Source of the DNA: Macrostomum lignano
Taxonomy: Eukaryota
Length of the DNA stretch: 64,000 nt
Assembly: GCA_002269645.1 (NCBI GenBank)
Contig: NIVC01001580.1
Location: 114,003-178,002 of the forward strand
Reading direction: 5' to 3'
Of this stretch, positions 1,983-64,000 are shown piece after piece; position 1 is the stretch's first letter; each line of letters opens with the position of its first letter. The notes beneath the pieces were generated by a model. That model was given only the letters and a program-made list of their open reading frames with translations, was not told where the DNA came from and searched no databases. Both the position numbers and the translations under genes were made by a program.

Positions 1983-2055
<73 letters not shown>

Positions 2056-20000: not shown

Positions 20001-22842
20001 AAACAGGTAAAAGAAAAAGGAAAGAAACGAGATACCTCATTGGCCAAGTACAAGCAGCTCCCTCGGATCCATTCACCGACCGGATCATCGGAGATGCTGG
20101 TAGTTGACGTCGCTCTGTTCCTCAGAAAACTGAAAATCTTGCCGGACCTTATTCTGACACGGCAGTTTGAGTTGATCCCAGTGACACTAAGCCTGCTATT
20201 GTACCTGAGGTTGGAAATCGCTAATAGCGAAGACACCACCACGCAGAATCAACTGCTGGAACTTAAAGCAAAGCTCCTTCAAATTGCAGTGAATGCTCTT
20301 GAGTGCTTGTACGCTAATATCGATAACGCTAAAGATAAGAAGCTATTAATGAAGTATTTAAACGGAAAAATTGGCAGTTATAAAGAGGAAAAATCTGAAG
20401 AACAGCCTAATGGCAATGATCAAACGCAAAGCCAGCCGTCTGACAACAAAAGAGCAAAAAATCTGGCCAAACGGCAAGACAGCAAAAAAGCTGATCAAGA
20501 GACAAACTCTGAAGAACAGCCTAATGGCAATGATCAAACGCAAAGCCAGCAGTCTGACGACGAGAAAAAAGTCGTACTCGGCCCAAAATTTCCGAGCCGG
20601 TACAAGGAGAACCAACGTTCCATCTACGAAAAGGATACTGAAAAGAACGCTGTGGAGCCAGAAAAGGATACCGTCAATTACTACTCCGTTTACGAAATGG
20701 TCAAGCTGCTCGATTCAAAAGATATTTTTGCAACTGAGTGCATCCACCGACTCCTTAAGAAAAAATGGAACGAAGCACCAAAAGACAACTGCCTTTCTCC
20801 TAAAACTAACTACTCTATAAACTTCTTTGCATTCATTGCCTTTTTAGTGTTTTTTGCGTGGTACTTGATTGATTTCCGGGTGACTTTTGACTGGGCTATT
20901 CCAGACGTGATAATGGCACTCTACCTGGCTTCATTTACGCTGCAAGAATCGTTTGAAATTTACAAGGGCGCTAGCAAACGACACTTTTTGAAAGGCAGCA
21001 AAGCATTTATGTTGCCGCGATATTTTAAGGAACAGCTCAATATGTTTGACTGTGCCGCGATTCTATTCCTGTGGATCGGTCTGGTCTGGAAGTGGATCAT
21101 CTTCTCACACGGCATCTCCTACCCCACTGCCTATTCCTGCCAGATGGTTCTCAGCACCGCATTCTTGCTGTGGGGCTTCCGGTCAGTGTCCTTCCTGAGC
21201 TACTTTGAGACCATCGGACCAGTGATCTCGATGATGCGCAGCCTGCTTCTAAAGGACCTTTTGCCTTTCGCCGCTATCACCATTGTGATATTCTACTCCT
21301 CCAGCGTCTTCTTCTTCAATCTGCTCTTCTCAACTGTAACCGCTACCGCATCCGAGCGGGAGTCAGAAGGCTACGCCACCAGCGTGTTCCTGCAGGTATT
21401 CACCCTGCCGTTCACCCTGTTCCTGGATAATCCTCCAGACTACACGGAATCTGGCGGCGGAACGGACCAAGAAATCGGATCCGTTGGCAACAAGACCGGC
21501 GTCAGTGCCTTCAAAAATTTCTTCGTATTTGTCTTCCTGATTGTCGTCAACATAGTGATGGTGAACCTATTGATCGCTCTGTTCAGCCTCCGCGTGAGCA
21601 CAATGGTCAGCAGGGCCCGCTGCATCTGGAGGCGAAAGTACTTTCACCTGATGCAGGAGTTTCAGCATGCCAGTCCTGTCCCTCCGCCTTTTTCATTTAT
21701 TTACTACATTTTAGCCTTCTCCAGGGAGGTGAATACTCGTAAGTGTAAGGAACGGCAGAAAGCTAAAAGTCAAGAGAAGGTGAGTGAGCGAGATTTTGCA
21801 TCCTATTTTTTTCATATTCAGAAACGGATCCAGGGTTTTTTAGGTGGTCGACTGTTTCATTCTTTAAGGGGTGAATTGGAGTTTCATGTCATGACAGGCT
21901 ATAGAGTTTCGTCAGTGCTACGAGCGTATTTCAGAGCAACAGGTGACCGTTTTTACTGGACTATTTTTCCCGCGGTCAGTTGACCCTTTGATCACAATTG
22001 ATCCACTACTACATAGCTCGTACGTTGCAAGTACTATATTTTAGTACTTTTAATATTTTAAAGTTTAACTCCCCCTACCACTGTACTTCTCGTCAATTTG
22101 TGGACCACAATATGGACGAATTATATTAGGTTTTGAGAACAAGTAGCTGCCCATGGCTTTGTACAGTAGATAAGCTTGGGATTACAGAGGTGGGAAGTGA
22201 AGGAAGAATGATATAAGATTTAAATTTAAATGTAGCTATTCCGAATGCATCATACTTTGGTCGCTGCTCGAAACTTTCGCATTCGAAATTCTGAACGAAT
22301 TACCGTGGATGTAGGCCATTTTAAACCGTTTTAGAGGCCATGTTATCGAAACCACCTGAAAAACCTTCACTCAAAATACTACGGTAAAGCAGAACCCCAG
22401 AGGACGACTAGAAAACCTAGAGCGTTCCAATTTTTTTAAAACGTGCTTTCCTAAACTTCAGGAGTGGTGGAAGTCGGATGGCAGTTCATATCCAGAAGAC
22501 TATCTGAAATTCCTGAGGATCCAAGCCAGCTGCTTCAGCAGAAACCGAGCCAATTTTCTGCAACAGCTGGAAGAGAACCAGCCGGACTTTGATGCTCTGA
22601 AGGCCTTCACACGCAACTCCCTCGCTCAAATGCGCGACAAGCTGGGAGAAACTATAGAAAAGCAGGAAGAGAAGCTGGAAGGGATGAACGAGAGTTTGCG
22701 CTCGGCAATGCTGGACAGGATGTACAAGCAGGAAGAGAAGCTGGAAGTGATAAACGAGAGTTTGCGCTCGGCAATGCTGGACAGGATGAACAGCTTGGAG
22801 AGTAAAGTTGACCAGTTGGTTCAACTAATTTCAAAGAGTTGA
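17065..22842 (+). CDS. Ankyrin-repeat TRP cation channel, copy 2; exons 17065-21779 (1-bp frameshift near 17590) and 22462-22842
   Basis: The 14 ankyrin motifs are colinear with copy 1. TM region reads GPVISMMRSLLLKDLLPF and NLLIALFS, then WRRKYFHLMQEFQHASPVPPPFSFIYY. Donor AAG|gtgagt (21779) joins acceptor ttcag|GAGTGGTGG (22462) in frame to a coiled-coil last exon. ORFs 17065-17607 and 17601-21983 join if the A7 run at 17590-17596 is read as A8. Confidence 0.88.
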
Positions 22843-33297: not shown

Positions 33298-33372
33298 TTC
33301 TAGTGTCTGTTCTATTCAGTCTAGCAGTACTGTGCTATTTGTTCTATCAGCATTTTTCTGTCTGTTCTATAG
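33298..33372. repeat. Decayed relic of the 23-bp TATCAGTATTGTGCTGTCTGTTC satellite upstream of FReD copy 1
   Basis: GTCTGTTCTAT, GTACTGTGCT and GTTCTATCAGCA fragments match the arrays at 38.9 kb and 46.7 kb. Confidence 0.6.
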
Positions 33373-33928: not shown

Positions 33929-36601
33929 ATACAGCTCTTTCAGTTGCGAGTTTCTGCAGCGTTGGCTCTGCTGCTCTGCTCGCTGGCAGCCGGCCAGGTC
34001 TCCCAGTGCGCTCCCGCTGACTCTCCGCGGCTCCGCTTCGTGGCGCAGCTCAGCGTGAACGGCTGCGCGCTGTTCGTGCACGACACGGGAGCGAGCGACG
34101 GTCCGCACTTGGCAGTCGAGCCGCTCATGTGCGTGACGGACAGCCTGAGAGGCATTGTTCCCCGATTCGACTTCATCACCCAGCAGCTGTACTTCAGCGT
34201 TCCTGTATTGATGAGGGATGCTGGGATGCTCGCAGAGGCTCAGCGTCAACTGCGGCATCTGTCAACGAGGTTTGTGAGCTTTGCCACGGTGACCAACATC
34301 AGCGTCTCAGCCGACAACCGCTCATCAATTCGGGCTTTGGGCTTCCTGTGGACTCCGGATGAGCCAGTAGCCACTCTGAGACTCGGCTTTGGGCAAAAAA
34401 CAGAAAAGAAATTCTAAATCAGCGAAAAAACATGTCAGGACTGGTGAATATCAACCAAATGAAATTTTTTTGTTAACAAGCGCCAAGATAAACGATCGAG
34501 AAAAAATTGAAAATTCCGCAATCGAGACTCTTTGAAAACTAAAACTCTCCGCTACTCTTCTGTCGAATGGCTGTTTCCACGAGGTTCAGAGCAGCTTCAT
34601 GCTGCAAAACGACAGCTTAATTGAAGTTGGCTTCTACAGAAAAAGGTTCCTACCCCTGTGCTCCGTATCCCCTGAGCTGCTATTCATTCGGTACGTCAAT
34701 CACGATAACTGCTCTGCCCGAGTGCACCAGAGACTCGACATCAAGGGCCACTTCCTCATCGAGCCTCTGCTGTGCCACAACATCTCCAGCTTGAGCAGCG
34801 AGTCAGTCAGGTATGACTACAGCCGAGACATGCACTACCTGAAGCTGGATCTGGTGCTGCAAGATGAGGCCACACGCGATGCTGTGAGGACTCAGTTGGC
34901 CGACTTGTCGCCTCGCTCGGTCGACTTCATGCGGCTGTGGACTGCTGAGAGATCGGTGAGCTCTTTGTTGAGTGCTCGGTTCGAGGTAGGTCCGCTGATG
35001 GCGTCGGCAGACTGGAGGTCCGCTCAGCTGCGGCTGCTCTGTGGAACCTTGACGAAGTGCCGCGATCTCAGGTTGGCTGACATGCTTGTGAGCTTCTGAT
35101 GCCTTATTCTAGACTAGAATTTACATGTATTCATGCGAATGTCACTTTCAGTACGAGACTAGAGTTTGTTACGGTTTTATTTTGTAGTGTTTTGGTTTTT
35201 AGCCGTCAAATTAGATAATGATCTGAATTGGTCCAAACAGCTGCCAACAGCTTCACTGACACTGACTTCCAGGACTGCTGTGCTGGCGGAGCCCGCTGAC
35301 CTGTGGCGACACGTGCAGTGGCGGGTGACTTCGCTGGTTGCTTAGCAGTGCCTCTTCAATTCCAGCCGAATCACTTCATCATGGAAAATGAAATCGTCTG
35401 TAGCAGCTATAGGTGCTCCAGCCCGAAGTCCTGTGCCAAGCTGCAATGCGCCTCTGCTCAACACACAGCGTACCCTTCCAGTGCGTTTCAACTGCAGCCA
35501 GACGGTCGCTGCTTCCTGAAGATTCAGCAGCGACTTACTGGCAGAGTGAGTTTCCAACGAGACTGGACTGAGTACGAGACTGGGTTCGGTGACCGCACGG
35601 ACTTCTGGATCGGTGAGCGGCAGTTTTGTATCAACTAATATTTGTGACGGGTGTCATAACAGATCTTGTCCATCTTATGACAGAGTGCTAGCTGACTCAA
35701 GCGCTTTCAATTGATGCGAGATGGATGCACAGCAGAGTACATTTACAGAAAGGAGTTAGATGTCTACTTTACACTAGGCTTGCTCCCTGGACCTCAGTGT
35801 AAATTCTGCTAACCCCCAACCCCATTGCGCCTCCTCTCCTCCGCGTGCCGTAGGGTTTCAAGCCTCTTGTTCACAGGCTCGGCCTGACTCCTATTGCTCC
35901 GACTCCAATTTTACTTTGCTGTCGCTGCTTCGCGCTCCCTGCCACCCGGCTGCCTTTGCCTTCTGCCTCTGCTGGTGGGTTGCGGATCCTTCTGTTATCA
36001 GCTGAGCCATCAACTCATCATCAACTAATATGACACTAAAAATGATGATCAAAAACGACTGCAGCCACTCAGAAGGAAGAGAGAGAGAGAAAGAGAGCGA
36101 TCTCTGGTGGTTGTCCATAAGGAGCGTCACTGCAGGCTGACAGTGTGACTGAAGTGACTCAGACTCAGCCGCTCTCCTCCCGCAGGTCTCTCCGCCATCC
36201 ACTCGCTCAGCCAGGGCGGCGCCACCCTCAGAGTGGAGATGAAGCTGTGGAACGGCTCTGAGCTGCATTCGGAGTACGCGGGATTCCAGGTGGGAGACGC
36301 CAGCACTGGGTATCGGATGACGTACCGAGAGATGCTGAGGGACAGGTCCAGTGTCAGCTTTGACGCTTTGAAGACCCAGAAAGGCATGCGGTTCTCCACG
36401 GCGAAGTGGTAACTGTGGAGTTCTGAATGCTCTGACAGAAATGGAGGGAGAAACAGAAGAAGTGGAGGCTGGTGGTTTACAAACTGCTATTATACCAACC
36501 CTAACGGAGCCTATTTTCCTTCAGTTGCTCCAGTTCCGGTCTGGTACTCTGGCTCTGCTCTGCTGTCTCTGTGTGAAGTGCGACTGATGCTGCAGGTTTG
36601 A
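33929..36601 (+). pseudogene. Fibrinogen-related domain (FReD) gene copy 1, pseudogene; exons ~33929-35071, 35273-35612, 36186-36601
   Basis: Near-identical to copy 2 over the signal peptide and domain 1, with the same splice sites. Lesions: start ATG>ATA (33929), stop/frameshift near 34417, GAG>TAG near 35345, and indel/stop near 36410. FReD motifs FQRDWTEYETGFG, FWIG, GMRFST and GGWWFTNCY remain. Confidence 0.88.
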
Positions 36602-38913: not shown

Positions 38914-39199
38914 TATCAGTATTGTGCTGTCTGTTCTATCAGTATTGTGCTGTGTGTTCTATCAGTATTGTGCTGTCTGTTCTATCAGTATTGTGCTGTC
39001 TGTTCTATCAGTATTGTGCCGTCTGTTCTATCAGTATTGTGCTGTCTGTTCTATCAGTATTGTGCTGTCTGTTCTATCAGTATTGTGCTGTCTGTTCTAT
39101 CAGTATTGTGCTGTCTGTTCTATCAGTATTGTGCTGTCTGTTCTATCAGTATTGTGCTGTCTGTTCTATCAGTATTGTGCTGTCTGTTCTATCAGTATT
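38914..39199. repeat. 23-bp satellite (TATCAGTATTGTGCTGTCTGTTC), ~12 units
   Basis: Seen directly; same unit as 46658-47272. Confidence 0.97.
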
Positions 39200-39544
39200 T
39201 TAACAGTATGAATAGCAAGCCATTTTATCAAACATGAATCAAAGTCGCCAGTCTTTAGAGACACAGTGGAGCTGAATTGATGCAGTTCGCTGTATAATGA
39301 GGCGATTGAAAATATTTTGATACGAGTTGCGCTATATTCACATCCATATTTCCCCTCTGGCATTTCCTTTCCCGCACTGTCACTCAATCATTCCCTCCTG
39401 AAAATAGTAAACTTTCACTCTGGCCTTCACCTCTGACATTTCCCCTCCGCCTCTGCCCTTTCATATTTTCATCCATTCCGACACTTTCTCTCTGGAACTT
39501 CTCTTCCGATCCGGCATATTACCTCCGGGACTTCACGTTCAGCA

Positions 39545-41600
39545 CTGCCCCTCTGGCGTTTCTTCTCGGCGTTTCCAATCCAGCACTTCCCCTCTGGCGT
39601 TTCTTCTTCGGCGTTTCCAATCCAGCACTTTCCCTCTGGCGTTTCTTCTTCGGCGTTTCCAATCCAGCACTTCCCCTCTGGCGTTTCTTCTTCGGCGTTT
39701 CCAATCCAGCACTTCTCCTCTGGCGTTTCTTCTTCGGCGTTTCCAATCCAGCACTTCCCCTCTGGCGTTTCCTCTTCGGCGTTTCCAATCCAGCACTTCT
39801 CCTCTGGCGTTTCTTCTTCGGCGTTTCCAATCCAGCACTTCCCCTCTGGCGTTTCTTCTTGGGCGTTTCCAATCCAGCACTTCCCCTCTGGCGTTTCCTC
39901 TTCGGCGTTTCCAATCCAGCACTTCCCCTCTGGCGTTTCTTCTTCGGCGTTTCCAATCCAGCACTTCCCCTCTGGCGTTTCTTCTTCGGCGTTTCCAATC
40001 CAGACTTCCCCTCTGGCGTTTCTTCTTCGGCGTTTCCAATCCAGACTTCCCCTCTGGCGTTTCTTCTTCGGCGTTTCCAATCCAGCACTTCCCCTCTGGC
40101 GTTTCTTCTTCGGCGTTTCCAATCCAGCACTTCCCCTCTGGCGTTTCTTCTTCGGCGTTTCCAATCCAGCACTTCCCCTCTGGCGTTTCCTCTTCGGCGT
40201 TTCCAATCCAGCACTTCTCCTCTGGCGTTTCTTCTTCGGCGTTTCCAATCCAGCACTTCCCCTCTGGCGTTTCTTCTTCGGCGTTTCCAATCCAGCACTT
40301 CCCCTCTGGCGTTTCCTCTTCGGCGTTTCCAATCCAGCACTTCCCCTCTGGCGTTTCTTCTTCGGCGTTTCCAATCCAGCACTTCCCCTCTGGCGTTTCT
40401 TCTTCGGCGTTTCCAATCCAGACTTCCCCTCTGGCGTTTCTTCTTCGGCGTTTCCAATCCAGACTTCCCCTCTGGCGTTTCTTCTTCGGCGTTTCCAATC
40501 CAGCACTTCCCCTCTGGCGTTTCTTCTTGGGCGTTTCCAATCCAGCACTTCCCCTCTGGCGTTTCTTCTTCGGCGTTTCCAATCCAGCACTTCCCCTCTG
40601 GCGTTTCTTCTTCGGCGTTTCCAATCCAGCACTTCCCCTCTGGCGTTTCTTCTTCGGCGTTTCCAATCCAGCACTTCTCCTCTGGCGTTTCTTCTTCGGC
40701 GTTTCCAATCCAGCACTTCCCCTCTGGCGTTTCTTCTTCGGCGTTTCCAATCCAGCACTTCCCCTCTGGCGTTTCTTCTTGGGCGTTTCCAATCCAGACT
40801 TCCCCTCTGGCGTTTCTTCTTCGGCGTTTCCAATCCAGACTTCCCCTCTGGCGTTTCTTCTTCGGCGTTTCCAATCCAGACTTCCCCTCTGGCGTTTCTT
40901 CTTCGGCGTTTCCAATCCAGCACTTCCCCTCTGGCGTTTCTTCTTCGGCGTTTCCAATCCAGCACTTCCCCTCTGGCGTTTCTTCTTCGGCGTTTCCAAT
41001 CCAGACTTCCCCTCTGGCGTTTCTTCTTCGGCGTTTCCAATCCAGCACTTCCCCTCTGGCGTTTCTTCTTCGGCGTTTCCAATCCAGACTTCCCCTCTGG
41101 CGTTTCTTCTTCGGCGTTTCCAATCCAGCACTTCCCCTCTGGCGTTTCTTCTTGGGCGTTTCCAATCCAGCACTTCCCCTCTGGCGTTTCTTCTTCGGCG
41201 TTTCCAATCCAGCACTTCCCCTCTGGCGTTTCTTCTTCGGCGTTTCCAATCCAGCACTTCCCCTCTGGCGTTTCTTCTTCGGCGTTTCCAATCCAGCACT
41301 TCCCCTCTGGCGTTTCTTCTTCGGCGTTTCCAATCCAGCACTTCCCCTCTGGCGTGTCTTCTTCGGCGTTTCCAATCCAGCACTTCCCCTCTGGCGTTTC
41401 TTCTTCGGCGTTTCCAATCCAGACTTCCCCTCTGGCGTTTCTTCTTCGGCGTTTCCAATCCAGCACTTCCCCTCTGGCGTTTCTTCTTCGGCGTTTCCAA
41501 TCCAGCACTTCCCCTCTGGCGTTTCTTCTTCGGCGTTTCCAATCCAGCACTTCCCCTCTGGCGTTTCTTCTTCGGCGTTTCCAATCCAGCACTTCCCCTT
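39545..41600. repeat. ~2-kb satellite of 42-bp units (TTCCCCTCTGGCGTTTCTTCTTCGGCGTTTCCAATCCAGCAC) with 40-bp variants
   Basis: About 49 units seen directly. The 2-bp-deleted variants cause the frame-switching in the repeat ORFs. Confidence 0.98.
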
Positions 41601-42412
41601 TGGCCAGAAGGAATGATGCCAGATTCCCTCTGCTGCCAGAGGGAAATTGCTGGCAGGTAAATTCCGGAGGGGAAATGCCGGAGATCAACTGCCAAAGGGA
41701 AATTCCCGTAGTTCGTTTTAGTATTCCGTTTGATTGATTTTTGTGTGCCATGTACTCGTAAATTCTCGATTGACTGTCGAAATGAAAACAACTGGCTATT
41801 TAATTAACAGCATTCAAGATAGACCAGCGCGACTGACTGACTTTAATCTGTAAACGAATAAGAGTAGCGCTACAGTCGCCAAGTTGCAGTTGCTCGGATT
41901 CCCACTTCAAAGGTTTCCCGTCATTTATTTATACTCTACTGCTGTCTCATCATTTCTGAGGCTCTCCTCCTGATCTGTGAGTTTGCTCGCAGGCGTTTGG
42001 TGCACTCGACAAAGACAGATTCAGACAGACAGATTACAGACGCCTCTGTTGAATTTATATTTAAGAAATGTATTTCGTTCAGATGATGCGCTAAAAGCAA
42101 AAACGAAGAAGACTAAGAAAACCTGAGTTAATAAATTAATTTGTTTACGCGATGCGCTGGTTGACAGCCATTTCTAAATGGAATGCTACGGCCTGCGGTC
42201 ACGCGCAGCTCTTCAAATTTTTCAGTTCGCAGAAACAAAGCCGTGCCTTGTGGTGGCCAGGGACTTCAGCTGGTGCAGCACGAATGCACAGGCACTAAAC
42301 AGCTCGACAGTTTGACTGGGGCGTTCGGATGCACCCAGCTGAGAGGTTCGACTGATTTACGCTATTGCGACTTTCACTATTGGATGGCATGCCCCCAACC
42401 CTGTGTGAGCTC

Positions 42413-42419
42413 TATATAA
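42413..42419 (+). promoter_or_regulatory. TATA box of FReD copy 2
   Basis: TATATAA about 100 bp upstream of the ATG at 42516; context conserved with copy 1. Confidence 0.6.
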
Positions 42420-42515
42420 GCCGGTGCAGCGCACAGCCCGCATTTCGCATCTGATTGTGCAAATCAAAGCAATAAAGCTTAACTGCATTCAAGCCCTGCA
42501 CTTGCATCTCAAGCC

Positions 42516-45500
42516 ATGCAGCTCTTTCAGTTGCGAGTTTCTGCAGCGTTGGCTCTGCTGCTCTGCTCGCTGGCAGCCGGCCAGGTCTCCCAGTGCGCTC
42601 CCGCTGACTCTCCGCGGCTCCGCTTCGTGGCGCAGCTCAGTGTGAACGGCTGCGCGCTGTTCGTGCACGACACGGGAGCGAGCGACGGTCCGCACTTGGC
42701 AGTCGAGCCGCTCATGTGCGTGACGGACAGCCTGAGAGGCATTGTTCCCCGATTCGACTTCATCACCCAGCAGCTGTACTTCAGCGTTCCTGTATTGATG
42801 AGGGATGCTGGGATGCTCGCAGAGGCTCAGCGTCAACTACGGCATCTGTCACCGAGGTCTGTGAGCTTCGCCACGGTGACCAAAATCAGCGTCTCAGCCA
42901 ACAACCGCTCATCGGTTCGGGTTTTGAGCTTCCTGTGGACTCCGGATGAGCCAGTAGCCACTCTGAGACTCGGCTTCAAAAGGATTGTTTTCAAGAACAA
43001 TTCAAGTAAATTTTCACGTCCAAAGATTTTACAGGAAGGTTTACCCCTCCGGCATTTTCAATCAGTATATACCCAGCTGAAGCGCAGTGATGACTTTGGA
43101 AGCTCACCACAAGAGGCTCTTGAAAAAGTGAAGATATCAGCTTTTATCATTTCAAACGGATCTTGTCATGAGGTTCAGAGCCGCGTCCTGCTGCAAAACG
43201 ACAGCATGTTCGATCTGGACTTGCACCGGCAAAGATTCTTACCTCTGCCGACATGCCGACAGCTGAAATTCATCCGCACCGTCAAACTAGAGAACTGCTC
43301 TGCCCGAGTGCACCAGACACTCGACATCGAGGGCCACTTCCTCATCGAGCCTCTGCTGTGCCACAACGTCTCCAGCTTGAGCAGCGAGTCAGTCAGGTAT
43401 GACTACAGCCGAGACATGCACTACCTGAAGCTGGATCTGGTGCTGCAAGATGAAGCCACACGCGATGCTGTGAGGACTCAGTTGGCCGACTTGTCGCCTC
43501 GCTCGGTCGATTTCATGCGGCTGTGGACTGCTGAGAGATCGGTGAGCTCTTCGTTGAGTGCTCGGTTCGAGGTCGGTCCGCTGATGGCGTCGGCAGACTG
43601 GAGGTCCGCTCAGGTGCGGCTGCTCTGCAGAACCTTGACGGAGTGCCGCGATCTCAGGTTAGCTGACATTTTGTTTTGTTTAATAGATATTATTTACTGA
43701 GCAGGACTTAGCAGTCTTAGCGAGAGTACTAAAAATTCTTTCAGTACCAGCTTGGTTGCTATTTAGCTATCGGGTGCAATAGAATTATTTGATTTGATAG
43801 TAATTTATAAGAAACAAGCTGTTGAAACCCGCGGATATTAAACCTAGGGAATTCCATTTTGAAACCTGGGAAAACAGGACTATTTTTGCATGTATTCTAC
43901 GCTCGTACAATCTAAGGTCAAACTCAAACAAAAATCTGTTAATAGTTAGGATAGAGTTAATTTAAAATAGAGTACATTCATGTAAAATTATTATTTGAGG
44001 CAAACACAAGTTGCCTCAAAAGGCAAAGGCAAACGCAAACACACAGAGACAGAGTTTTCATTTTTATAGGTAGAAATCTCTATGTAGAACTGCACCGTTC
44101 AAGAAATGATTTGACGATTTCCAGGACTGCTCTGCTGGCGGAGCCCGCTGACCTGTGGCGACACGTGCAGTGGCGGGTGAAATCGCTGGTTGCTGAGCAG
44201 TGCCTCTCCAAGTCCAGCCAAATCGATTCGTCATGGAGAATGAAAGCGTCTGAAGATGCAGTCAGCTGCTCCAGTCTAAAGTCCTGCGCCAAGCTGCACA
44301 GCGCCACTGACCAACGCACATCGGTGTTTCAAATGCTTCCAGATGGTCGCTGGTTTGTGAAGATACAGCAGCGACTTACCGGCAGAGTGAGTTTCCAACG
44401 AAACTGGACTGAGTACGAGACTGGGTTCGGTGACGGCACTGACTTCTGGATCGGTGAGCGGCAGTTTTGTATGAACTAATACTCGTATTGTATGACGGGA
44501 GTGGTAGCTGATCATGTGAATCTTATGATGAAATGCTAGTTGACTCATGCACTTTCAACGGATGAAAGATTGATTAAAAGCTTAGCTGCTCGCCCTATTA
44601 ATAGGATATTAAGTCTAATTTGCGGCATGACGGCAATGCTCTACATTGACCTTTCCCGCCTGATTTGCGTTTCGGGTCCTCGGGCTGCTTCAGGTAAACC
44701 AGTAAGCTGCTGCCATTATTTTCCTCGAGCTCACCAAAAAGATGAGACCATCCGTTCTTCGGTTCTGAGTACGAGGAGAGTCCTGAATCGAAGTTTGGGT
44801 TTCCTTGGCTCAGGACTGTGTGCGCAGTCTTGACTGTGGACTGACTGTGGTTTTTATACCGCTAGGACCGTCGATGGCACAATAGTTTCCTTCAGATGAA
44901 GTAAGATGAAAGATAAAAGTTTTCTGGACTTACCAATGAAAATAATTTTGAAACTCCGTTCAGACAAAGAAAATTTCGAAAAATAGAAGTCCCAAAGCTA
45001 ATCTGAAGCGAAGAGCAGTGAAAAGCAGATCGGCCCTTCACAAGCTGTTCGAACAAGAAACTCGGGCTTGCTGCGTTGGCAACCACAGTGCATTTGTTGA
45101 AATGGAGGCGCACCAGCCAGAGCAGCACCAGCCAGAGCAGCACCAGCCAGAGCAGCACCAGCCAGAGCAGCACCAGCCAGAGCAGCACCAGCCAGAGCAG
45201 CACCAGCCAGAGCAGCACCAGCCAGAGCAGCACCAGCCAGAGCAGCGCCAGCCAGAGCAGCACCAGCCAGAGCAGCACCAGCCGACTCGGTTCTGGTGGT
45301 GCTGCTTGAAACTGACTGATTGTTACATTATTTGTTACTTATGATTTTTCATTTTTTCAGCTAAGGAGCTTTACTTACAGTTTAATTCATTTTATAGAAA
45401 TACAGTATCGTCAATTTTGTGACGATAAACACTGGTGTACTTCAGCTGCGAAGATCCGCTTCCCACTGGTCAATCATTCTCCTCAACCCCACAATAATCG

Positions 45501-46422
45501 CTGCAAATAAAAAGCTTTTGCGTTTATTTCTCTATAGTTTGCAGAAAGCCTGGTCCTGGAGCCATTTCTTTAACTAATAAAGATTTGCACCTTTAATGCC
45601 ATGTAAAAGATAAAAAAATTAAAGCCTCATAAAAACCGTATAATAGATACGAGTACATGACGTACTTTTGAGAAAGTGTGAAGTTAGCTTGTCTCCGACA
45701 AGTAATTTATCTGAGTCGCAGTCAAGAATGCAAACCGAAGTATTTAGATAACAATTCGTTTCAGTCCTGATCTGATACAATTTAAAAACCCAAATTGCTG
45801 TGTTAGAAGAGCAAAAAAGCTGCTCATCTGGGATATCAGAAGGCTTAAAATGGAGCATTTAGCTTTTGCAATAAACAAGTTTAGCTCCACTGTCTGCTAT
45901 GAAACGCACACTGGTAAAATTTTATCCTCAACATCCGAATGACGATTCACCTGGCAGCAGCGGCGACAAGCCGAGCAGAAGTGACTCAGACTCAGCCGCT
46001 CTCCTCCCGCAGGTGTCTCCGCCATCCACTCGCTCAGCCAGGGCGGCGCCACCCTCAGAGTGGAGATGAAGCTGTGGAGCGGCTCTGAGCTGCATGCGGA
46101 GTACGCGGGATTCCAGGTGGGAGACGCCAGCACTGGGTATCGGATGACGTACCGAGAGATGCTGAGCCACAGGTCCAGTGTCAGCTTTGACGCTTTGGCC
46201 CACCACAAAGGCATGCGGTTCTCCACGATGGACAAGGAGAATGGCTCTGGTTTATGCTCAAGCACTCCTGGAAAAGGAGGCTGGTGGTTTAAAAACTGCT
46301 ATAACGCCAACCCTAACGGACTTTTTCCTTCGCGAGGTAGACGAAATTACGGCTATATGATATGGCACTCTGGCTCTACTATTGTGTCTCTTCGTGAAGT
46401 GCGGCTGATGCTGCAGATTTGA
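42516..46422 (+). CDS. Secreted fibrinogen-related domain protein (626 aa) with a duplicated unknown N-terminal domain; exons 42516-43657, 44125-44453, 46013-46422
   Basis: ATG plus signal peptide (MQLFQLRVSAALALLLCSLAAG). GT-AG junctions are in phase 2 and phase 1, totalling 1881 nt with no stops. The C-terminal FReD reads KIQQR..GRVSFQRNWTEYETGFG..DFWIG|VSAIHSL..LRVEM..GMRFSTMDKEN..C..GGWWFKNCYNANPNG. Confidence 0.9.
45111..45283. repeat. 15-bp minisatellite (CACCAGCCAGAGCAG), ~11 units, in FReD intron 2
   Basis: Seen directly. Confidence 0.95.
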
Positions 46423-46657: not shown

Positions 46658-47272
46658 CTGTTCTATCAGTTATTGAGCTGTCTGTTCTATCAGTATTGTA
46701 CTGTCTGTTCTATCAGTATTGTACTGTCTGTTCTATCAGCATTGTGCTGTCTGTTCTATCAGTATTGTGCTGTCTGTTCTATCAGCATTGTGCTGTCTGT
46801 TCTATCAGTATTGTGCTGTCTGTTCTATCAGTATTGTGCTGTCTGTTCTATCAGTATTGTGCTGTCGGTTCTTTTAGTATTGTGCTGTCTGTTCTATCAG
46901 TATTGTGCTGTCTGTTCTATCAGTATTGTGCTGTCTGTCTATCAGTATTGTGCTGTCTGTTCTATCAGTATTGTGCTGTCTGTTCTATCAGTATTGTACT
47001 GTCTGTTCTATCAGTATTGTACTGTCTGTTCTATCAGCATTGTGCTGTCTGTTCTATCAGTATTGTGCTGTCTGTTCTATCAGTATTGTGCTGTCTGTTC
47101 TATCAGTATTGTACTGTCTGTTCTATCAGCATTGTGCTGTCTGTTCTATCAGTATTGTGCTGTCGGTTCTTTTAGTATTGTGCTGTCTGTTCTATCAGTA
47201 TTGTGCTGTCTGTTCTATCAGTATTGTGCTGTCTGTTCTATCAGTATTGTGCTGTCTATTGTCAGTATTGTG
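46658..47272. repeat. 23-bp satellite (TATCAGTATTGTGCTGTCTGTTC), ~26 units
   Basis: Seen directly. Confidence 0.97.
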
Positions 47273-48069
47273 TACGGCGTGGACTAACGTGGGGTTGTTT
47301 GGCTCCACCCGTGGGGGTGGGTTTGCGGCGTTGGTGTGGGTGGTTGGTTGTGTTCTGTGCCTTTTTAGGCCTCGTTTTGAGTTGAAATCGCTTGTTCTCG
47401 CTGCGTTGAATTTTTTTACCCCTGCGTAGCAATGGCTGACTCAAACCACAGAGTGCATATGCCCGAGACTGTGAAAGGCCTGAAGGCCGCGCTTATACAG
47501 GCAGATCTCTCTACAAACGGCCGAAATGCAGTACTCAGGGAACGCTTGGCTGCTCACCACGAAGCAACGCAACTGGATCTCAACGCCCCGACTGACCCAC
47601 GTCGAGAAGAACTAGACACGGACAATAGTTCCAGAAATAGCAAAAGGCAGAGGACGTGGAGATGCCCCACGAGGAGCTCGCAGAGAAGAGGGTGCGCCTT
47701 CTGACTCTGCGCAAGCAAGAAGCCGCTCTAGAAGCTGACGCTCGATCTACGGAGACGCAATGATCCGCCCGGTGAGATGTCGTGCCTTTTTGAGAGGGTT
47801 TTGAATGAAGGCCCCAACCTTGAGTCAGAAGGGACAGTTGTCGGAGGGGCGTACAGGCCGGTGGAACACCTAAGTAGCCGTGAGCAGAAGGATGCCGGGT
47901 TGGCCACCACAGTCGATAAATCGGGCCGATTGAGTATGAAGTCAAAGTCAGCGGCTGTTGAGTCGATGTCATTCGGTGACTGGATTATTGGAAACGAAAA
48001 GGTGCTGATTCACATGTTGCATGACGGCAAGCTGGTGCGTCTTTCCGAGACGGGAACCGTGGATGTGTC

Positions 48070-51000
48070 TATTGGATTTCCAACGAATGCAAATGTAAAT
48101 GCTTATTTTATATCTATGGCTCAGTCATGCTTAAATATACAGATAAGTGAGTCGCAGCCCCAGAGGCTGATCATTTTCTTTTCTAGCACGAATCGACGAA
48201 CAGCCAGAGCGGCGTCATTGAGAAGCACGTCTCCGACCCGAGCACCGTCAATGCAGTCGGACAGTCAAAATGACCAAGAGGATTCCCTAAATCGAAGAAA
48301 ACTGGAATTGACAGCAAGCAGTTTCCCAGAAGAAAGTCCAGTGCTCGCGATGTCTGTAGCCGCTGTGGAAGAAGCTCACATACAGCAGAAAACTGCTATG
48401 CGCGCAACGATACTTGCAAGAAATGCAACAAGGTGGGACATCATGCTAAGATGTGCAGAACCAAACTACCAACCAAAAGTAAACTTCAAGTTTACGAAAC
48501 GAAAAAATCAGGCGTGACTGAATCGTCAGACTCAGAGGAGATTCATACGATAGCAAGCGTTAGCGCGAAGAAGAACGGTGCAACAAAGCAAGCTGTCATC
48601 AACGGCAGAAAATGCGATGTACTAATTGACTCGGGCTCCAATCTAAATCTAATATCCTACAACACAGTTGCTAAAATGGTGAGTCCGGATCAGATTAACT
48701 CGAGATCATGTATCAAGATTTGGTCGTACGGGGCCAGGATCCCCATCGAAACCCAAGGCACAGTAAATCTGGAAGTTACTCTCAACGGAAGTACACAGCA
48801 AATGAAGTTTCACGTAACCCCAGTAAAGGATGCACGCACTATCATTGGATTTGAGGATGCCTTCAAGCACGGTTTCCTGACATGGGGCTCGGATAAAAGC
48901 TGCCTTCATATCGAGAACATTCAGCAGCCAACGCAAGTGATTCTGGAAGAGTTCAAGGATGTCTTCCGTGGAATAGGAAAACTCAAAGACAGCAAAGTTA
49001 AGATTCGCCTGAAGGAGAACGCCAATCCTATTGTTCATCCACCATCGCGTATACCAGCACACCTCCATCAGAAATTGCGCGAAGAACTAGAAGGGCAGTT
49101 AAAAGATGATATAATCGAGCCAGTCAAGGGAACTACTGAATGGGTGTCAAGATTAGTGGCTGTTCCGAAGGCCAACGGTAAATTGAGAGCCACGGTTGAT
49201 CTCAGAAACATAAACAAGGCTACTAGAAAGGAGCACTACCCACTGCCCAGCATCGACGAACAACTGATTAACGTTGGCGATGCTAAGTACTTCTCCTACT
49301 TGGATGGTAACAAAATGTTTCATCAGCTAGAACTGCACGAAGACTCCAGGATGCTCACGACATTCTCAACAGGCTTGAAAGACTGGCCACTTATGAGATA
49401 CAAGAGACTACCAATGGGCTGGGTGAACTCATCGTTTACACTCCAATCGGAAATTCATTGAGTTCTTGCTGGCATTTCAGGAGTTCTGAATATCCAGGAT
49501 GACATCGGGATCTACGGTTGTACTTTGGAAGAGCACAATGACCGCTTGAGAAAAGTCCTGCAACGACTGAAAGAGAATAACATAACCATCGGGAAGGAAA
49601 AGTGCAAGTTTTCAGTGGATAAAATAACCTTCATGGGAATGCTACTGACTCGCAAGGGATTGCAAATTGGTGACGCAAAGGTGCAAGCCATTCGGACTTT
49701 CAGAGAACCTACAAATCCCAGCGAGGTAAGGTCATTCATGGGCCTAGTGCAATTCGTCTCACGCTTCATCCCTAACTTGGCGACCATCGCAGAACCGATT
49801 CAGAAGTTAACGCGAAAGCAGGTCAACTGGAACTGGAGCACAACACAGAAAGAAGCCTTTGCAGAAATCATCAAACGAACTTCTACCTCAGAAACACTGG
49901 CCTACTTCGACACTTCAAGAACAATCGAACTGCGAGTCGACGCTTCACCGGTGGGTCTCGGAGCTGTCCTAACCCAAACAGACAGTCGAGGCACCATCAA
50001 TCCGGTATGCTACGCAAGCAGGACGCTAAGTGACGTCGAAAGAAGGTACAGCCAGACCGAGCGCGAGGCATTAGCAATAAAATGGGCGTGTGAAAAGTTT
50101 CAGATCTATCTACTGGGCGCTCCAAAATTCACGGTTATTACTGATCACAAGCCACTGCTTGGTTGTTTTCGCCCAGGTTCCAAACCGCCTCCGAGAATCG
50201 AGAGATGGGCGATGCGCCTCCAGCACTTCAATTTCAAATTAAATTACGAACCAGGAGAGGCGAACGAGGCAGACTATTTATCCAGACAACCGATGAACGT
50301 GGAGAACCCCAAAGCATCAAGTGCCAAGGCAGACGAACATCTCATCCAGCAAATTTCTACGGAAGTTCAATATTGGGGAATCTCTAAAAGTGACATTGAG
50401 ACGGATTCGAAAGACGACCCGTGGATTCAATCAGCTTTGAGATCGCTACAAACGGGACAATGGAGTAAATCCAACACGTATTACAACGTCAGAAGCCAAC
50501 TTTCCAGCACAAATGGAGTCCTGTTGTACCAAGACCGCTATGTAGTTCCGAGAAAGTCTGTTATGGCAGTGTTAGAGACAATGCACGAAGGGAATTTGGG
50601 AATCACCAAAATCACTGAGCGGCTGAAAAGATGCGTTTGGTGGCCTCTGATGGCAGAAGATGTACAGAACTTTGTATCATCATGTGAAAGTTGCTCAAGA
50701 GCACTTCCGGAAACGAGAAAACCATCAATCATTCCGACGGAGCTACCAGAAGGAGCCTGGAAGCTAATAGGTACCGATCTAAAAGGACCTCTTCCGTCTG
50801 GAAAGACACTATTAGTCATCGTAGACTACTATTCTCGCTACCCGTTAGTTTACGTGTTGCCGAAGGCTGACGCGACGGAGGTGAGCAATAAAATGAAGGA
50901 AGTATTTCACTCGTACGGTGCACCAGAAGAATTAATCACAGACAATGGTCCACAGTTCATATCCGAAGAATTCAAGAATCTAATGCGAGAATTTAACGTA

Positions 51001-51872
51001 AAGCACCGAAAGAGCACCCCATACTGGCCTCGTGGCAACGCAGAAGTGGAACGCTTCAACAAAACTCTAAACAAGACCCTGCAAATCTGCAGTCGGGAAA
51101 GGAATAACCTGAAACAAGAACTTGGACGGTTATTGTACAGCTACAGATCTTCACCGATCCGCGCGACTGGAGAATCCCCAGGGATGCTATTCTTTAAGAG
51201 AGAATTCGACAGGAAGTTACCAATTCCGAAAAGGAGAACCATGACTCCAAACAGCGACATCAAAGCTCGTGATGACGAGTACAAACGGAAAATGGCAGAA
51301 GACGGACTAGCCAAGTACCAGAAGATGTTCTGCCCTGGCAATCAGGTCATCTGGAGACGAGAATTTCGCAACAGCAAGTACGAACAGCCTTATGAAGTGC
51401 AACCGGGAACGGTCGTCGGGACTAATGGCACGACTGTGAGGATTCAAACCGAAGACGGCAGAATAGTGCGAAGGAACTTCTCGCGACTAAAGAGAGTTAA
51501 TTGGAAAGACTCCCCAGAAGAAAAATGCGAGACGGAGGTTCCCTCAAGGCTCAAAGCAGCAAACCAGCCAGTACAGGAGGAGCCTACAGTGAGAGATCGA
51601 CAACGAGGAATCGGTCTCCGACAGAATCCAAAGCCGCCGGAGAGATTCGTGCCTGGATAATTTGGGCAACGATTCCTGAACATTTTTTGGTTTGTCTGAC
51701 TGTATTTGTTCAAAGGGGGGAGAGATATTGTGTTTCCAACGAATGCAAATGTAAATGCTTATTTTATACCTATGGCTCAGTCATGCTTCAATATACAGAT
51801 AAGTGAGTCGCAGCCCCAGAGGCTGATAATTTTCTTTTCTAGCACAAGAGCTAGTACACCAATAATACAACA
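48070..51872 (+). mobile_element. Ty3/Gypsy LTR retrotransposon (Mag-like), internally deleted; 5' LTR fragment 48070-48189, 3' LTR 51726-51872, TSD GTGTC
   Basis: GTGTC flanks both ends (48065-48069 and 51873-51877). The two LTR copies differ at 5 of 120 shared positions. PPT AAAGGGGGGAGAGA at 51712-51725 abuts the 3' LTR. Domain order is PR-RT-RH-INT. Confidence 0.93.
48190..51660 (+). pseudogene. Gypsy gag(C-term)-pol in a single frame, with in-frame TGA at 48271 and 49459
   Basis: Two CCHC knuckles (CSRCGRSSHTAENC, CKKCNKVGHHAKMC). Protease LIDSGS; RT with NIQDDI; RNase H VDASPVGLGAVL and TDHKPL; integrase H/C zinc region, GTDLKGP, ITDNGPQF and GNAEVERFN. Confidence 0.92.
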
Positions 51873-59619: not shown

Positions 59620-62600
59620 TCACTTGCAGCTTCGGCAGCCGCAAGCCCGAATCACCTGGTACTTGAACGTCTTGGTGACTCCGCCAGCTGAAAGTTAAAT
59701 AGTTCATGTAATTAGTTGTTTGTTCAAGGCTGACCACAGAATGAAACCCCGGCCTAGGCTACCTCAATTGAGCAGGGTGCAATTGATACATGATTGAACT
59801 AATATTGGTATTATTTGCTCAAGTCTGGAACTCCAAGACTAGCTCGAGAGAACTTTGCTTTGAACGAACTGAACCGAGGAGGCACTCACGGCAAGACAGC
59901 TGCGTCTCCATAGTGCTCGTGGATGTTGGCTGGCAGCAGGCGCACTGACTGACCAGCATGCCCGTAGCCTCGCTCACGTAGGCACCGCTGGAGCAGCCAC
60001 CCGCGCAGGCGGTCAGGGCCACCGCCTTGGTTGACACGCAGTCGCCCTGACGCAGCACCTTGGCCGCAGTTGTCACCGGCTTGCAGTTGGATGGCGCCTC
60101 AGTTGTTGTAGCATTTGTAGTTGTTGTGGCAGCCAGAGTGGTTGTTGTAATGGCGGCTGTAGTTGTTGTTGTAGCGGGAGTTGTTGTGGTGCAGGCCTCG
60201 ATCATCTCGCAGACGACGTTGCCAGACGACAAATTGCGCATCGTGTAGCCGGCTGGACAGACGTAGCCGCAGTTTACGTAGCCTGACTTGATGCACTTGG
60301 ACCGGACGTCGGTCATGTTGCTCATGGACTCGGAGCCGCATGGCAGTCGCAGAGGTGTAGCGTGCAGACTGGCGCAGTGGTTGTGACGATAGCGGTAGTT
60401 GTCGTAGTTGGAGCAGTCGTGGTGGTCACAGGCTCGCAGTAGCAGCACTTGTTGCCCTTTACCACAGGTGCCATGCCGTTGGCGCATTTAGCTGGGCATT
60501 CTGTGATCTTCTCTACCAGCCTGGTTTCGCCCGATGAGGTTCGTCGGCACTCGAGCGACTTGCACGGGCCGTCAGACCACACCGTGTCGAGAGGGTGCTT
60601 CACGCCCTTGTACTCGCAGTACTTGATCGGCACGCACTCGCAGCACTTACCATCGGCGGGGTCGTCGTTCTTCATCACATATCCAGATGGGCAAGTTGAC
60701 AGATGGCAGCCAGACTCCTTGCACACGGCGCCCTTTTCCATGGTGCACTCGCAGGAGCGGCACTTGTCAGTCCATTTCTTTCCAACTGGATACTTTACAC
60801 CCTCCATCTCGCAGGGGCAGCTGGGCACGCACTTTCCTGAGGCCTCGTCCATGTAGGTGCCCTTCGGGCAGGCGCAGCCAGGCTTGCAGGTTGCGAGACA
60901 GGCAGCAGACATCTTGCGGTGCTTGCAGGTCTTGTGGCAGTCTTTGCACGGTGTCCACTCCATGCCACCGGCTGAGGGACGAGTAGATTTGCAATTGTTT
61001 TTACCTGCGTATATAGAATTAAAATTAACTGGCAGAGGCAATGCTCAAAACTTACTGCAATTGTGGCATCCGTCACGCTCTGTGTTCACTTCACGCACCA
61101 GTCCGCTAGCTGTGCACAAAACATCTGTGCAATTCTTCGCACTCGGGATCTTCTCACCAATCTGAATAATCAAAGGATGGTGGGTTGTACCGCTATGTTA
61201 TCATGACATTAATATCCAAAATATGAAGTGAAGCTACATGTATATTGATGCAAAGATGAATATTACAAACCTTGAGTACTCTGCTCTGAACGCTGTAGTA
61301 ACACGGGCACTCCGTTCGAGCGATGCATTTTCCTCCGTTCATTACCATTCCCTCCGGACAGGTGCAGCCTGGCAGGCAAGCAGATCCTGTCGGGCACTCG
61401 GTCTTGTCGCAGGTCTTCACACAGGTGCAGTTGGTGGGCACCATTGGCGATTTGCACTCGGGCGGGCAACCGTAGACCCGGATGTTGAGGCCGGCGGCCA
61501 AATCTGACCTGATGCGCTGAATGTTGATGCGCACGGCGAGCGTATCGATAAGATCCGCCTTTAGCATGGCCAGCCGAATTCGCTGATATTCGCCAAACTT
61601 GTCGTTCATGTTCCACAGCCGGATGGCTCCAGAGGCATCTTTGACAGGTGTAAATACTCGATTATCGGTGCTGACGTCAATGGATACGGAACGGATATTG
61701 TACGGGCTGATGTCAATGTGCGACAGCTGGATGGTGTCTCTGAAGCGAACGCTCAACGACGGGTTGGAATCGCTGGAGGCTGAACGCCAGCCTGTAGAGG
61801 TTGGCGCTGCGTTGCTTACAGTTCTGCCTTCCTCTGTTGAAGAAGCGTCAAAGCGCAGGAAGAAGCCGCTAGATACATCGCTGACAACCTTGTCACACAC
61901 TGGTGGCGGAGTCGGAGCCACTTTGTCTCCAAGACTGTAGTTGTTGCAGGCGTGGTGCGTGGTTGTAGTTGTAACAATCTTAGTTGTTGTTGTGATTGGC
62001 TCCGCTGTGGTCGGGCGATGCGATGTGCAGACGCCGGCTCGGCAGTTGCTCCAAATCTTGCCTCCCTTCTTGGAGTCCCAGCGGCACTGGCACTCTCTGC
62101 AGTCACCCATGTCACACCACTCATCAATGCGGATGTCAGTTGTGGTTCCGTTTCTGAACTTGCACTGGCAGGCTCTGAGACATGTATCTGAGCCTGGGTA
62201 CTTGACACAATATCCCTTCATGTTGTTTCGATATCCAGTTGGACAGATAGATGATCCGCAGTTCGACAGAATGCTGTGACATTTGGAGTTAGAGTTTACA
62301 GGCTCACTGAATCTCACGGATGTCATCTCTTCGCATGTCACTTCTTTTAGGCAGGTGCTTGGAAGTGGCGACTTACAATCGATTGGAGGCGTTGTAGTGC
62401 AACCAACCGTGTCCTTGACGCAGAATTTGTCGACCTTGCTGTAGCCATCTGGACAGCAAGTGACTGTCTTTGCAATGCACGCAAACTGCTCTGAGATGGA
62501 TCCCTTAAAGTCAGTCAGCTGAACTGAGGACGCACCACCAGGGGCTCGCACTTGAGCGTTTCGGTCGCAGCCGAAGTCCAACAGACAAGTCTCGTCGCAA

Positions 62601-64000
62601 GCTGGGCTAGTAGTAGTTGTTGCTGCTTCTGTAGTAGTAGTTGTTGCTGCTTTTGTAGTAGTAGTTGTTGGCGCTGATGTGGTTGTTGTAGTAGTAGTTG
62701 GCGTCGTTGTAGTTGTCGGAACTGGTGTAGTTGTTGTTGTTTTTGGTGTCGTTGTGGTTGTAGGAACTTGTGTTGTAGTTGTAGTTGTCTGCGGTGTTGT
62801 TGTGGTAGTCGTTGGCTCTGGTGTGGTCGTTGTTGTTGGTTCTGGTGTTGTTGTGGTAGTTGTTGGCTCTGGTGTGGTTGTTGTTGTTGGTTCTGGTGTT
62901 GTAGTGGTAGTCGTTGTCTCTGGTGTGGTTGTTGTTTTTGGTTTTGCTGTTGTTGTAGTAGTCGTAGTCGTTGGTATTTCTGTAGTTGTTGTTGTTGGAG
63001 TTGTAGTAGTGGTTTTTGGAGTGTTGTTGTTGTTGGTGTTGTTGTGGTAGTAGGGACTGGCGTTGTTGTTGTTGCTGTTGTTGTTGTTGTTGTTGTTGTC
63101 GGCGCTTCCGTTGTTGTGTAACGAGGAACAGTTGGTGGTTTGAACGGCGTCTTCGCTGTGGCTGTTGCAGTTCCAGCAGTATTAGTATTAACGCCATTCA
63201 TTTTGCAGATCTTAAGGCTAATAGTAGCAGTAACATCTGCTGCAGATGGGAAAGTAACATTTGTGAACCTTATCTTTGTAATTTTAGCCCTCGGGGCAAC
63301 TTCAAATGTAAGTCCGGATGAAATAGTTCCCTTCGGCTTGCCAACTTCATTGATTGGGGTCCAAGCTGTCTCGTTGGCATATATGTACTCAGCCACGACT
63401 GATCCGGCGACTGGCGAGTCCACGCGAACCTAGAACAATGTAAGTAGTGTACAATATTGAAAATAGAAATAACAAATACTTTATTTAGCTTTTACTTTTG
63501 AAAATAGAGTCTCGGTGAGTTACAAACCTGAGCCAATTTTAGAGAGCCGTACATGCGGTTCATGACGACCTCAATACTAGGCGACTTAGCGGAAGCTGGG
63601 ATTGTCCATTTATTCTGAGAGAACGATCCCACACTGACTGTAACGGCTGTCGCAGGAATGTAGCTCGGGTTATTGATGGCTTCTTCAAGAGTGTCACAAT
63701 CGATAATAGTTGTGGTTGTTACTGCGGCTGTGGTAGTGGTTGTTGGTGCAGTTGTCGTCGTTGGCGCAGCAGTTGTTTGTTGTTGTCATTGGTTTTTGAG
63801 TTTGTAGTAGTGGTTGTTGAAGCAGTCGTTGTAGTAGGCGTTGTTGTTGTTGTCGTCGGCAGCGGTTGTTGTGGTCGTCGCAGCTGTTGTTTGTGTAGTA
63901 GCAGCAGTGTTGTTGTTGCTGCAGTTGTAGTCTTGTCCTTGATTTCGCTCAGTTGGAGTGGGGAGTTGTTGTTGTTAGTTGGCCGCAATGGTAGTTGTTT
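59620..64000 (-). CDS. C-terminal part of a large gel-forming mucin/hemolectin-like secreted protein; exons >64000-63528, 63429-61271, 61161-61056, 60971-59890, 59687-59620; two apparent 1-bp frameshifts (~63020, ~60365)
   Basis: Thr-rich tracts and two FA58C/discoidin-like domains (one ending LNIRVYGC). TIL domains CVKTC...CLPGCTCPEGMV and CHKTC...CKPGCACPKG; VWC-like GKKWTDKCRSCEC. The C-terminal cystine knot CAGGC...CACCQP...C|PGG...VIRACGCRSCK* ends at 59620. Confidence 0.85.

Follow-up and report, generated by a model that had tools for sequence, protein, structure and literature searches.

What does a fibrinogen-related lectin of a flatworm carry in front of its recognition domain, when that part resembles no curated domain? 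The question is raised by a single gene, here called gene A, in a 64,000-nt stretch of Macrostomum lignano DNA (the window; coordinates are positions in it, on the + strand unless stated otherwise). On balance we think it probable that gene A is an intact, TATA-driven gene for a 626-aa secreted glycoprotein, in which undescribed repeat units serve as stalk or presentation modules for a lectin head, the fibrinogen-related domain (FReD).

It is sensible to begin with the gene model itself. The open reading frame (ORF) 42516..43700 (+) is present in the window and is interrupted by an AG/GT donor at 43657/43658; the first exon of the initial annotation, 42516-43657, is thus borne out by ORF, ATG, and GT donor at 43658. 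Gene A is intact and has three exons, with canonical splice sites and a spliced coding sequence of 1881 nt that translates into 626 aa without stops (Table 1). Exon 2 (44125-44453) opens at the acceptor tccag/G at 44124/44125, which retains the paralogue-conserved frame RTALLAEPADLW. The database model P0001 uses the frame "SPLTCGDTCSGG," not the conserved one; all paralogues read "R-TALLAEPADLWRHVQWR...".

Exon 1 also holds a candidate in-frame intron of 60 nt. The M. lignano proteins P0001 and P0002 read KNNS/IYTQL across it, the NCBI paralogue models retain the stretch, and splicing, if it takes place, is predicted to shorten the protein from 626 to 606 aa. The paralogues P0018 and P0014 have short in-frame introns at a comparable position. 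In the first-round protein search all of the matches (21/21) were from M. lignano, the best being 94% identical, and not higher because one 20-codon stretch is skipped. Beyond the signal peptide, the protein contains an even number of Cys (14) along with nine N-x-S/T sequons, and would appear to be secreted, N-glycosylated, and disulfide-rich.

Exon 1 had been described as two diverged copies of a module of ~100-130 aa. The duplication holds: in a single BLASTP comparison the two halves give E=7e-12, with 102 aa aligned at 29% identity, and every segment that the initial annotation listed falls within this alignment. A hidden Markov model (HMM) from both copies (126-column profile, several paralogues) finds two units in every full-length paralogue of the window family. 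The size was set too low, as an alignment of 26 units places the full unit at about 175-215 aa. Its core of ~125 aa carries the motifs (G/N)C..V(H/Y), F..EPL.C,.D(Y/F), and Y.x.x.L.D, a helix, and then SV.F and LRL.C; after the core the unit runs on through LRLxC-x5-C..L, a helix, a hydrophobic strand, and a final Cys. Most of what had been taken for a "Cys-rich linker" belongs to unit 2, as its C-terminal sub-domain; this unit crosses the exon 1/2 junction, and the true linker between unit 2 and the FReD is only about 30 aa long (422-451).

Unit 2 (aa 245-421) has six Cys and every unit motif. Unit 1 (aa 27-243) keeps C0, C1, C2, and C5 (Cys 27, 46, 68, 217) and has lost C3/C4, and in the window subfamily its helix region has given way to a variable AT-rich stretch, which AlphaFold2 (AF2) models with a predicted local distance difference test score (pLDDT) below 50. 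Cysteines come and go in pairs: C1/C2 are both present or both absent in 26/26 units, as are C3/C4 (26/26), and C0 (just before strand 1) goes together with C5 (behind the final strand) in 14 of the 15 units inspected by eye. From this co-occurrence alone, we infer that the canonical unit has three disulfides, C1-C2, C3-C4, and C0-C5, the last of which would clasp both ends of the unit. In the window protein the predicted pairs are C27-C217, C46-C68, C247-C407, C261-C282, and C371-C377. E34 and P35 are the only near-invariant residues in the 26-unit alignment, and conservation elsewhere falls mostly on hydrophobic residues and cysteines.

Is this unit a known domain in disguise? The initial annotation had not recognised it, and neither did any of the curated collections. 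Pfam gave 0 matches at E<=10 for exon 1, and no family recurred across the 26 units at the same threshold; Ig families in particular were absent from these Pfam results, both for exon 1 and for every one of the units. A Pfam domain already known to be fused to FReDs was looked for and not found. Sequence-profile searches of the PDB with the unit returned no credible match, the sole one being at chance level (E=1.8). The unit is without a solved or curated relative.

Structure prediction adds to this. An AF2 model of the whole exon-1 protein, made with 11 near-identical paralogues, reached pLDDT 51, too poor for a fold search. With the 26-unit alignment, the model of unit 2 reached pLDDT 92.7 and a predicted template modelling (TM) score, pTM, of 0.86. 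This rise in confidence with diverse units points to real covariation. The model is mixed alpha/beta in the order b1-b5, a1, b6-b8, a2/a3, b9-b10, and the independent low-depth exon-1 model agrees. Foldseek comparison of the unit model with 350,542 PDB chains gave none at E<=0.001 (best E=0.045, TM<=0.23). The 50 best PDB matches listed were antibodies, kinases, MHC chains, and the like (TM<=0.23, probability <=0.38). The comparison with pore-forming folds that had been proposed came out negative, with no aerolysin/ETX-MTX2, MACPF, or actinoporin fold among those 50 best PDB matches listed.

A search of BFVD, which holds predicted viral structures, gave one match, A0A7S7YF07 of Medusavirus stheno T3 (E=2.2e-4, probability 1.00, query-normalised TM 0.60, 173 aligned columns, 13% identity). 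It is an uncharacterised 417-aa protein of a giant virus of amoebae. Sequence comparison does not pick it up, and neither the PDB nor BFVD yielded a second structural neighbour.

These results bear on one alternative, namely that the unit is an extremely diverged member of a known extracellular alpha/beta class missed by Foldseek, HMMER, and Pfam. The structure search covered the PDB and BFVD, so that a wider family may exist in AFDB or among the Pfam DUFs, and the Medusavirus match shows the fold outside flatworms. Set against this are a best PDB TM of 0.23 for so confident a model and the failure of any Pfam family to recur among the units, and we regard the alternative as decidedly unlikely.

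The C-terminal part of the protein is far easier to place. The fibrinogen domain that had been read downstream of exon 1 matches PF00147 (Fibrinogen_C) at aa 450-622 (E=4e-33, 115.5 bits vs a cut-off of 22, profile positions 35-216 of 221), and its closest solved relatives are the FBG domains of tenascin-R (E=2e-24), angiopoietin, and ficolin. The P-domain disulfide cysteines C572 and C586 align with two tenascin-R cysteines, and the GGWWF..C..NPNG signature is present as GGWWFKNCYNANPNG. At the Ca-site motif (FSTxDxDxD), sequence comparison gives FSTMDKENG in the window copy and FSTMDRDND in paralogues. The A-domain Cys is missing, the "VYCDM" position aligning to "VF-QM," and the first ~35 profile positions are unmatched. 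Judged by profile, the domain is a FReD with a reduced A sub-domain.

With ficolins, tenascins, and angiopoietins the window protein thus has in common a bona fide FReD, the P-domain disulfide, and the GGWWF..C..NPNG signature. Unlike them, it has no collagen stalk, coiled coil, EGF, or FN3 repeat upstream, the place of the stalk being taken by the new units. No collagen-like Gly-X-Y run occurs in the 626-aa sequence, nor does it have a Collagen match in Pfam.

How widely is the unit distributed? The 126-position unit profile was run with HMMER against 1.84 billion (1.84e9) representative proteins, and 15 proteins were found at the threshold of E<=1e-3, the named ones all from M. lignano except for a spurious sponge match. 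The latter, from Sycon ciliatum (P0031/P0053), is a repeated ~20-aa "HF..EPLMCSTRI" that covers profile positions ~13-47 only, and was rejected as low-complexity similarity. Genuine relatives number about a dozen, nearly all from M. lignano; others are a 4.7-kb contig of SRA run SRR30276812 (Logan), a second Logan fragment, and a JGI metagenome contig. The module therefore looks lineage-restricted at the level of sequence.

The JGI contig (metagenome 3300040801; L002 231-674 and 1040-1435) encodes two units in the order of the window gene, with 28% and 38% identity, and a related animal was therefore probably present in that sample. A scan of metagenome contigs with unit-2 patterns gave 54 pattern matches, of which 0 were confirmed.

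Among the relatives the unit is combined with different heads and in different numbers. One unit precedes the FReD in P0028 (452 aa), and two do so in the window family and four more divergent subfamilies, an architecture conserved in >10 paralogues, including ones only 44-60% identical. Six units with a period of ~200 aa precede a Lectin_C domain (PF00059) in P0022 (1462 aa, from the SRA run), and five units were scored in its M. lignano counterparts P0034/P0035. P0022 is just 49% identical to these counterparts and, for that reason, probably stems from another species.

The M. lignano six-unit C-type lectin proteins (PAA78245.1, PAA78696.1, and PAA72931.1) are annotated only as "C-type lectin domain-containing." They share with the window protein the repeat unit (5-6 copies by HMM), the ~200-aa period, and the cysteine pattern; they differ in having a Lectin_C head, not a FReD, more units, and often no C1-C2 pair. 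Mlig-tuf2, which is species-specific and has a weak CLECT match, is unrelated as far as can be told, its gene IDs (Mlig020807.g2-g5) not being those of the six-unit lectins.

Gene A does not stand alone in the window. Its tandem paralogue, gene B, is a pseudogene: its start codon has become ATA in place of ATG, the frame shifts near 34390-34404, and in-frame stop codons are found at 34533, 35343, and 36410. DNA identity between the two is 98-100% in the unit-1 core (42513-42812) and 97-98% in the unit-2 core (43345-43584); elsewhere, identity falls to about 81% in exons 2-3, and neither the exon-1 centre (about 42%) nor the introns can be aligned. In the promoter region gene A is 70-93% identical to gene B. 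Tandem arrays of the family also occur on three other contigs.

Contig NIVC01001149.1 (L004 6698-16176) carries three of the family's genes in tandem, namely P0018, P0014, and one more copy that is interrupted by a stop. In the first two, the introns at the unit-1 tail and the unit-2/FReD junction are in frame and very short, some 60-90 nt; at these positions the window gene has introns of 467 nt and 1559 nt.

Synonymous divergence (dS) and the ratio of nonsynonymous to synonymous divergence (dN/dS) were computed by region among six close genomic copies. Low dS was found for the signal peptide and unit-1 core (aa 1-139; dS 0.055, dN/dS 0.45), the unit-2 core (aa 256-371; 0.075 and 0.41), the unit-2 tail (aa 372-421; 0.072 and 1.20), and the N-terminal half of the FReD (aa 452-551; 0.09 and 0.47). 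Values were higher in the unit-1 tail/centre (aa 140-255; dS 0.84, dN/dS 0.45), the pre-FReD linker (aa 422-451; 0.63 and 0.62), and the C-terminal, ligand-binding half of the FReD (aa 552-624; 0.34 and 1.05).

Because synonymous near-identity reaches into pseudogene B, this pattern argues for gene conversion, rather than purifying selection, as the cause of the near-identity seen in the unit cores and in the FReD's N-terminal half. The variable blocks (unit-1 tail, pre-FReD linker, and C-terminal half of the FReD) would either escape conversion or be kept diverse. Such a mosaic resembles those of diversified recognition-lectin families, a likeness that is not proof of an immune role.

What, then, would the units do? 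We suggest that they are rigid, disulfide-clasped, N-glycosylated stalk or presentation modules that space and orient the carbohydrate-binding head, and that may add a secondary binding or self-association surface. They would not be catalytic or toxic effectors. A stalk is preferred to an effector because the unit is used once or twice before FReDs and six times before C-type lectin domains, and because its conserved positions are mainly structural. The protein as a whole would then act in extracellular glycan recognition, most simply of non-self or microbial sugars, which is the weakest step; an immune role is plausible from the evolutionary pattern. Invertebrate immunity makes repeated use of chimeric lectins, in which a stalk of repeats bears a recognition head, and to our knowledge their stalks have so far come from a small set (IgSF, collagen, coiled coil, and EGF). 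The window protein is this known design built with a lineage-restricted, undescribed domain.

A different division of labour had been proposed in the initial annotation, which saw a new effector domain, possibly toxin-like, coupled to a recognition domain. The undescribed, FReD-linked domain has stood up; the effector or toxin role has not. In its more general form, this reading makes the N-terminal module the working part, either an effector or a second variable recognition domain, which the FReD merely targets. The module is indeed novel and without an assigned function, a hypervariable unit-1 tail sets the paralogues apart, which would suit a recognition surface, and dN/dS in the unit-2 tail is about 1.2. 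However, the hypervariable piece is a low-confidence, probably disordered loop whose dS is also high (0.84), and which therefore speaks for old divergence rather than clear positive selection. Foldseek found no pore-former, enzyme, or toxin fold among the PDB matches listed or in BFVD, the conserved positions other than the two near-invariant residues are mainly hydrophobic or cysteine, and variable copy number (1x/2x/6x) with interchangeable heads is typical of spacer repeats. We consider this reading unlikely.

The anatomy of stalk and head may also be right and the biology different. The family could be reproductive, that is, a secreted seminal-fluid, egg, or female-tract lectin that evolves fast under sexual selection. 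Lineage restriction and tandem expansion would also fit this, as would the dN/dS of about 1 found for the FReD's binding half. Another M. lignano FReD transcript group, RNA815_9549.1-.6, is tail-limited, and its member RNA815_9549.4 is prostate-gland specific by in situ hybridization and is listed among putative seminal-fluid proteins (PMC4490696, PMC5977470). Identity of this group with the window family was considered and rejected (RNA815_9549.x; Weber 2018, Arbore 2015): RNA815_9549.4 is a different FReD gene, whose partial sequence is 33% identical to the window FReD over 43 aa, lacks the N-terminal units, and has no DNA match to the window or related loci. A literature search on Macrostomum fibrinogen-related proteins and the gene IDs of the family found no description of the window family, and an exact-sequence look-up of P0002 in transcript assemblies found no record. 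As it stands, we would not expect the reproductive reading to prove correct.

Finally, the idea that the half-to-half similarity or the gene itself is an artefact (chance alignment, assembly chimera, or non-coding ORF) could appeal to a window rich in minisatellites and transposons and to an adjacent copy that is a pseudogene, but it is effectively refuted by the E value between the halves, by an architecture that recurs in >10 paralogues and in a 49%-identical multi-unit protein from another source, by the gain in AF2 confidence from diverse units, and by a frame that stays intact over three canonically spliced exons.

It is important to remember that several points weigh against the interpretation of gene A as a lectin on a stalk of new units, with conversion acting on its scaffold and an immune function. 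The stalk role is argued from architecture, and the unit could itself bind ligands. Lectin activity of the window copy is uncertain because of its degenerate DKENG Ca-site and the missing "YCDM" cysteine of the A domain. The fold libraries compared were the PDB and viral predictions, and a neighbour may exist in AFDB. A very recent duplication could partly explain the low dS of the cores in place of conversion. The prostate-limited M. lignano FReDs keep a reproductive role a serious alternative to immunity.

A close known parallel to the window family is found in snails. The FREPs of Biomphalaria consist of one or two IgSF domains plus a C-terminal FBG domain. Like the window family, they are secreted, with one or two N-terminal non-lectin modules, a short variable connector, and a C-terminal FReD. 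Each forms a multigene family that has diversified in a mosaic or conversion-like manner and whose ligand-binding halves have diverged. Unlike the IgSF domains of the FREPs, the N-terminal modules of the window protein are not immunoglobulin-like: the model is mixed alpha/beta with three helices, and Fab and MHC chains match it only at TM ~0.2.

With this parallel in mind, a bolder proposal can be made, which we offer tentatively and consider rather unlikely. The unit may be a new extracellular fold, arising in or near Macrostomorpha or having an ancient or horizontally transferred origin shared with the giant-virus protein. It would be used as a modular scaffold for a diversifying FReD/C-type lectin repertoire, with gene conversion homogenising the scaffold and three segments, including the sugar-binding site, kept diverse.

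Table 1. Features of gene A and its tandem paralogue, with window positions and the basis of each assignment
Feature	Position	Strand	Basis
TATATAA box, candidate core promoter	42413-42419	+	Read from sequence; ~100 nt 5' of the ATG
Exon 1 (aa 1-380 plus 2 nt): signal peptide, unit 1, core of unit 2	42516-43657	+	ORF, donor, 94-100% match to M. lignano proteins P0001/P0002
Predicted signal peptide, aa 1-22, MQLFQLRVSAALALLLCSLAAG/Q	42516-42581	+	Hydrophobic h-region then small residues; AF2 helix aa 2-20
Repeat unit 1 (aa 27-243): core aa 31-155, then degenerate tail without C3/C4	42594-43244	+	HMM domain aa 31-155, E=2e-59; unit alignment
Variable AT-rich centre of exon 1 (aa ~156-200)	42981-43115	+	Unalignable between paralogues; pLDDT<50 at aa 156-199
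Candidate in-frame GT..AG intron, 60 nt, within variable centre	43006-43065	+	Paralogue model comparison
Repeat unit 2, exon-1 part (aa 245-380): b1-b8, a1, C0-C4	43248-43657	+	HMM domain aa 246-371, E=2e-60; AF2 pLDDT 92.7
Repeat unit 2, exon-2 part (aa 381-421): end of a2, a3, b9-b10, C5 (C407)	44125-44245	+	Acceptor, unit alignment, AF2
Variable linker, aa ~422-449, with C429 and C435	44246-44329	+	aa identity 0.59-0.66, dS 0.63 among close copies
FReD, first part, end of exon 2; donor G/GTGAGC at 44453/44454	44330-44453	+	PF00147 match aa 450-622
Exon 3: remaining FReD, TGA stop 46420-46422	46013-46422	+	Acceptor cag/G at 46012/46013
Gene B, tandem paralogue, pseudogene	33929-36598	+	tblastn, reading frames, binned identity; 8.6 kb 5' of gene A

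The surroundings of the two genes are repeat-rich. Between them, at 39540-41604, lies a 42-nt minisatellite of 49 copies with 97% identity, which creates long spurious ORFs in all frames. A 23-nt minisatellite (unit TATCAGTATTGTGCTGTCTGTTC or a rotation of it) is found at 46658-47272, at 38914-39199, and as a trace at 33320-33370. The first of these arrays follows gene A at a distance of about 240 bp, the second follows gene B at about 2.3 kb, and the trace precedes gene B. As the minisatellite lies near both genes, the tandem duplication unit seems to include it. Directly downstream of gene A, at ~47400-51660 (+), there is an LTR (long terminal repeat)-retrotransposon-like gag-pol region (RVT_1, RT_RNaseH, Integrase_H2C2, rve), probably degraded because it is split over several ORFs.

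Further away, two uninterrupted ORFs of 1197 and 1460 aa, at 8633-12226 (+) and 17601-21983 (+), encode ankyrin-repeat proteins and look like a tandem pair. An ORF at 687-2138 (-) has a non-LTR retrotransposon endonuclease/reverse-transcriptase (Exo_endo_phos_2) domain. Near the other end, an ORF at 61193-62581 (-) matches F5/8 type C (discoidin) weakly, falling just short of the Pfam cut-off (E=7e-6), and possibly represents a further secreted gene of lectin-like type. It adjoins a tandem repeat with a 51-nt unit at 62637-63010 that is coding-like.

What does gene A mean for the wider community? It presents an undescribed domain, in the proposed role of a lectin stalk, in a model flatworm that is amenable to transgenesis and RNA interference. 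A confident predicted structure without a solved neighbour makes the unit a target for structure determination and for a new domain-family entry, and its structural resemblance to a Medusavirus protein, which was not anticipated, offers a clue to where the fold came from. The family is also a natural example of segmental gene conversion beside preserved diversity, extending into a pseudogene. This combination is what is sought in candidate repertoires for non-self recognition, and flatworm innate immunity is poorly characterised. If the tentative reading of a new-fold repertoire is true, the family would be a flatworm counterpart of the snail FREPs, built on a different chassis.

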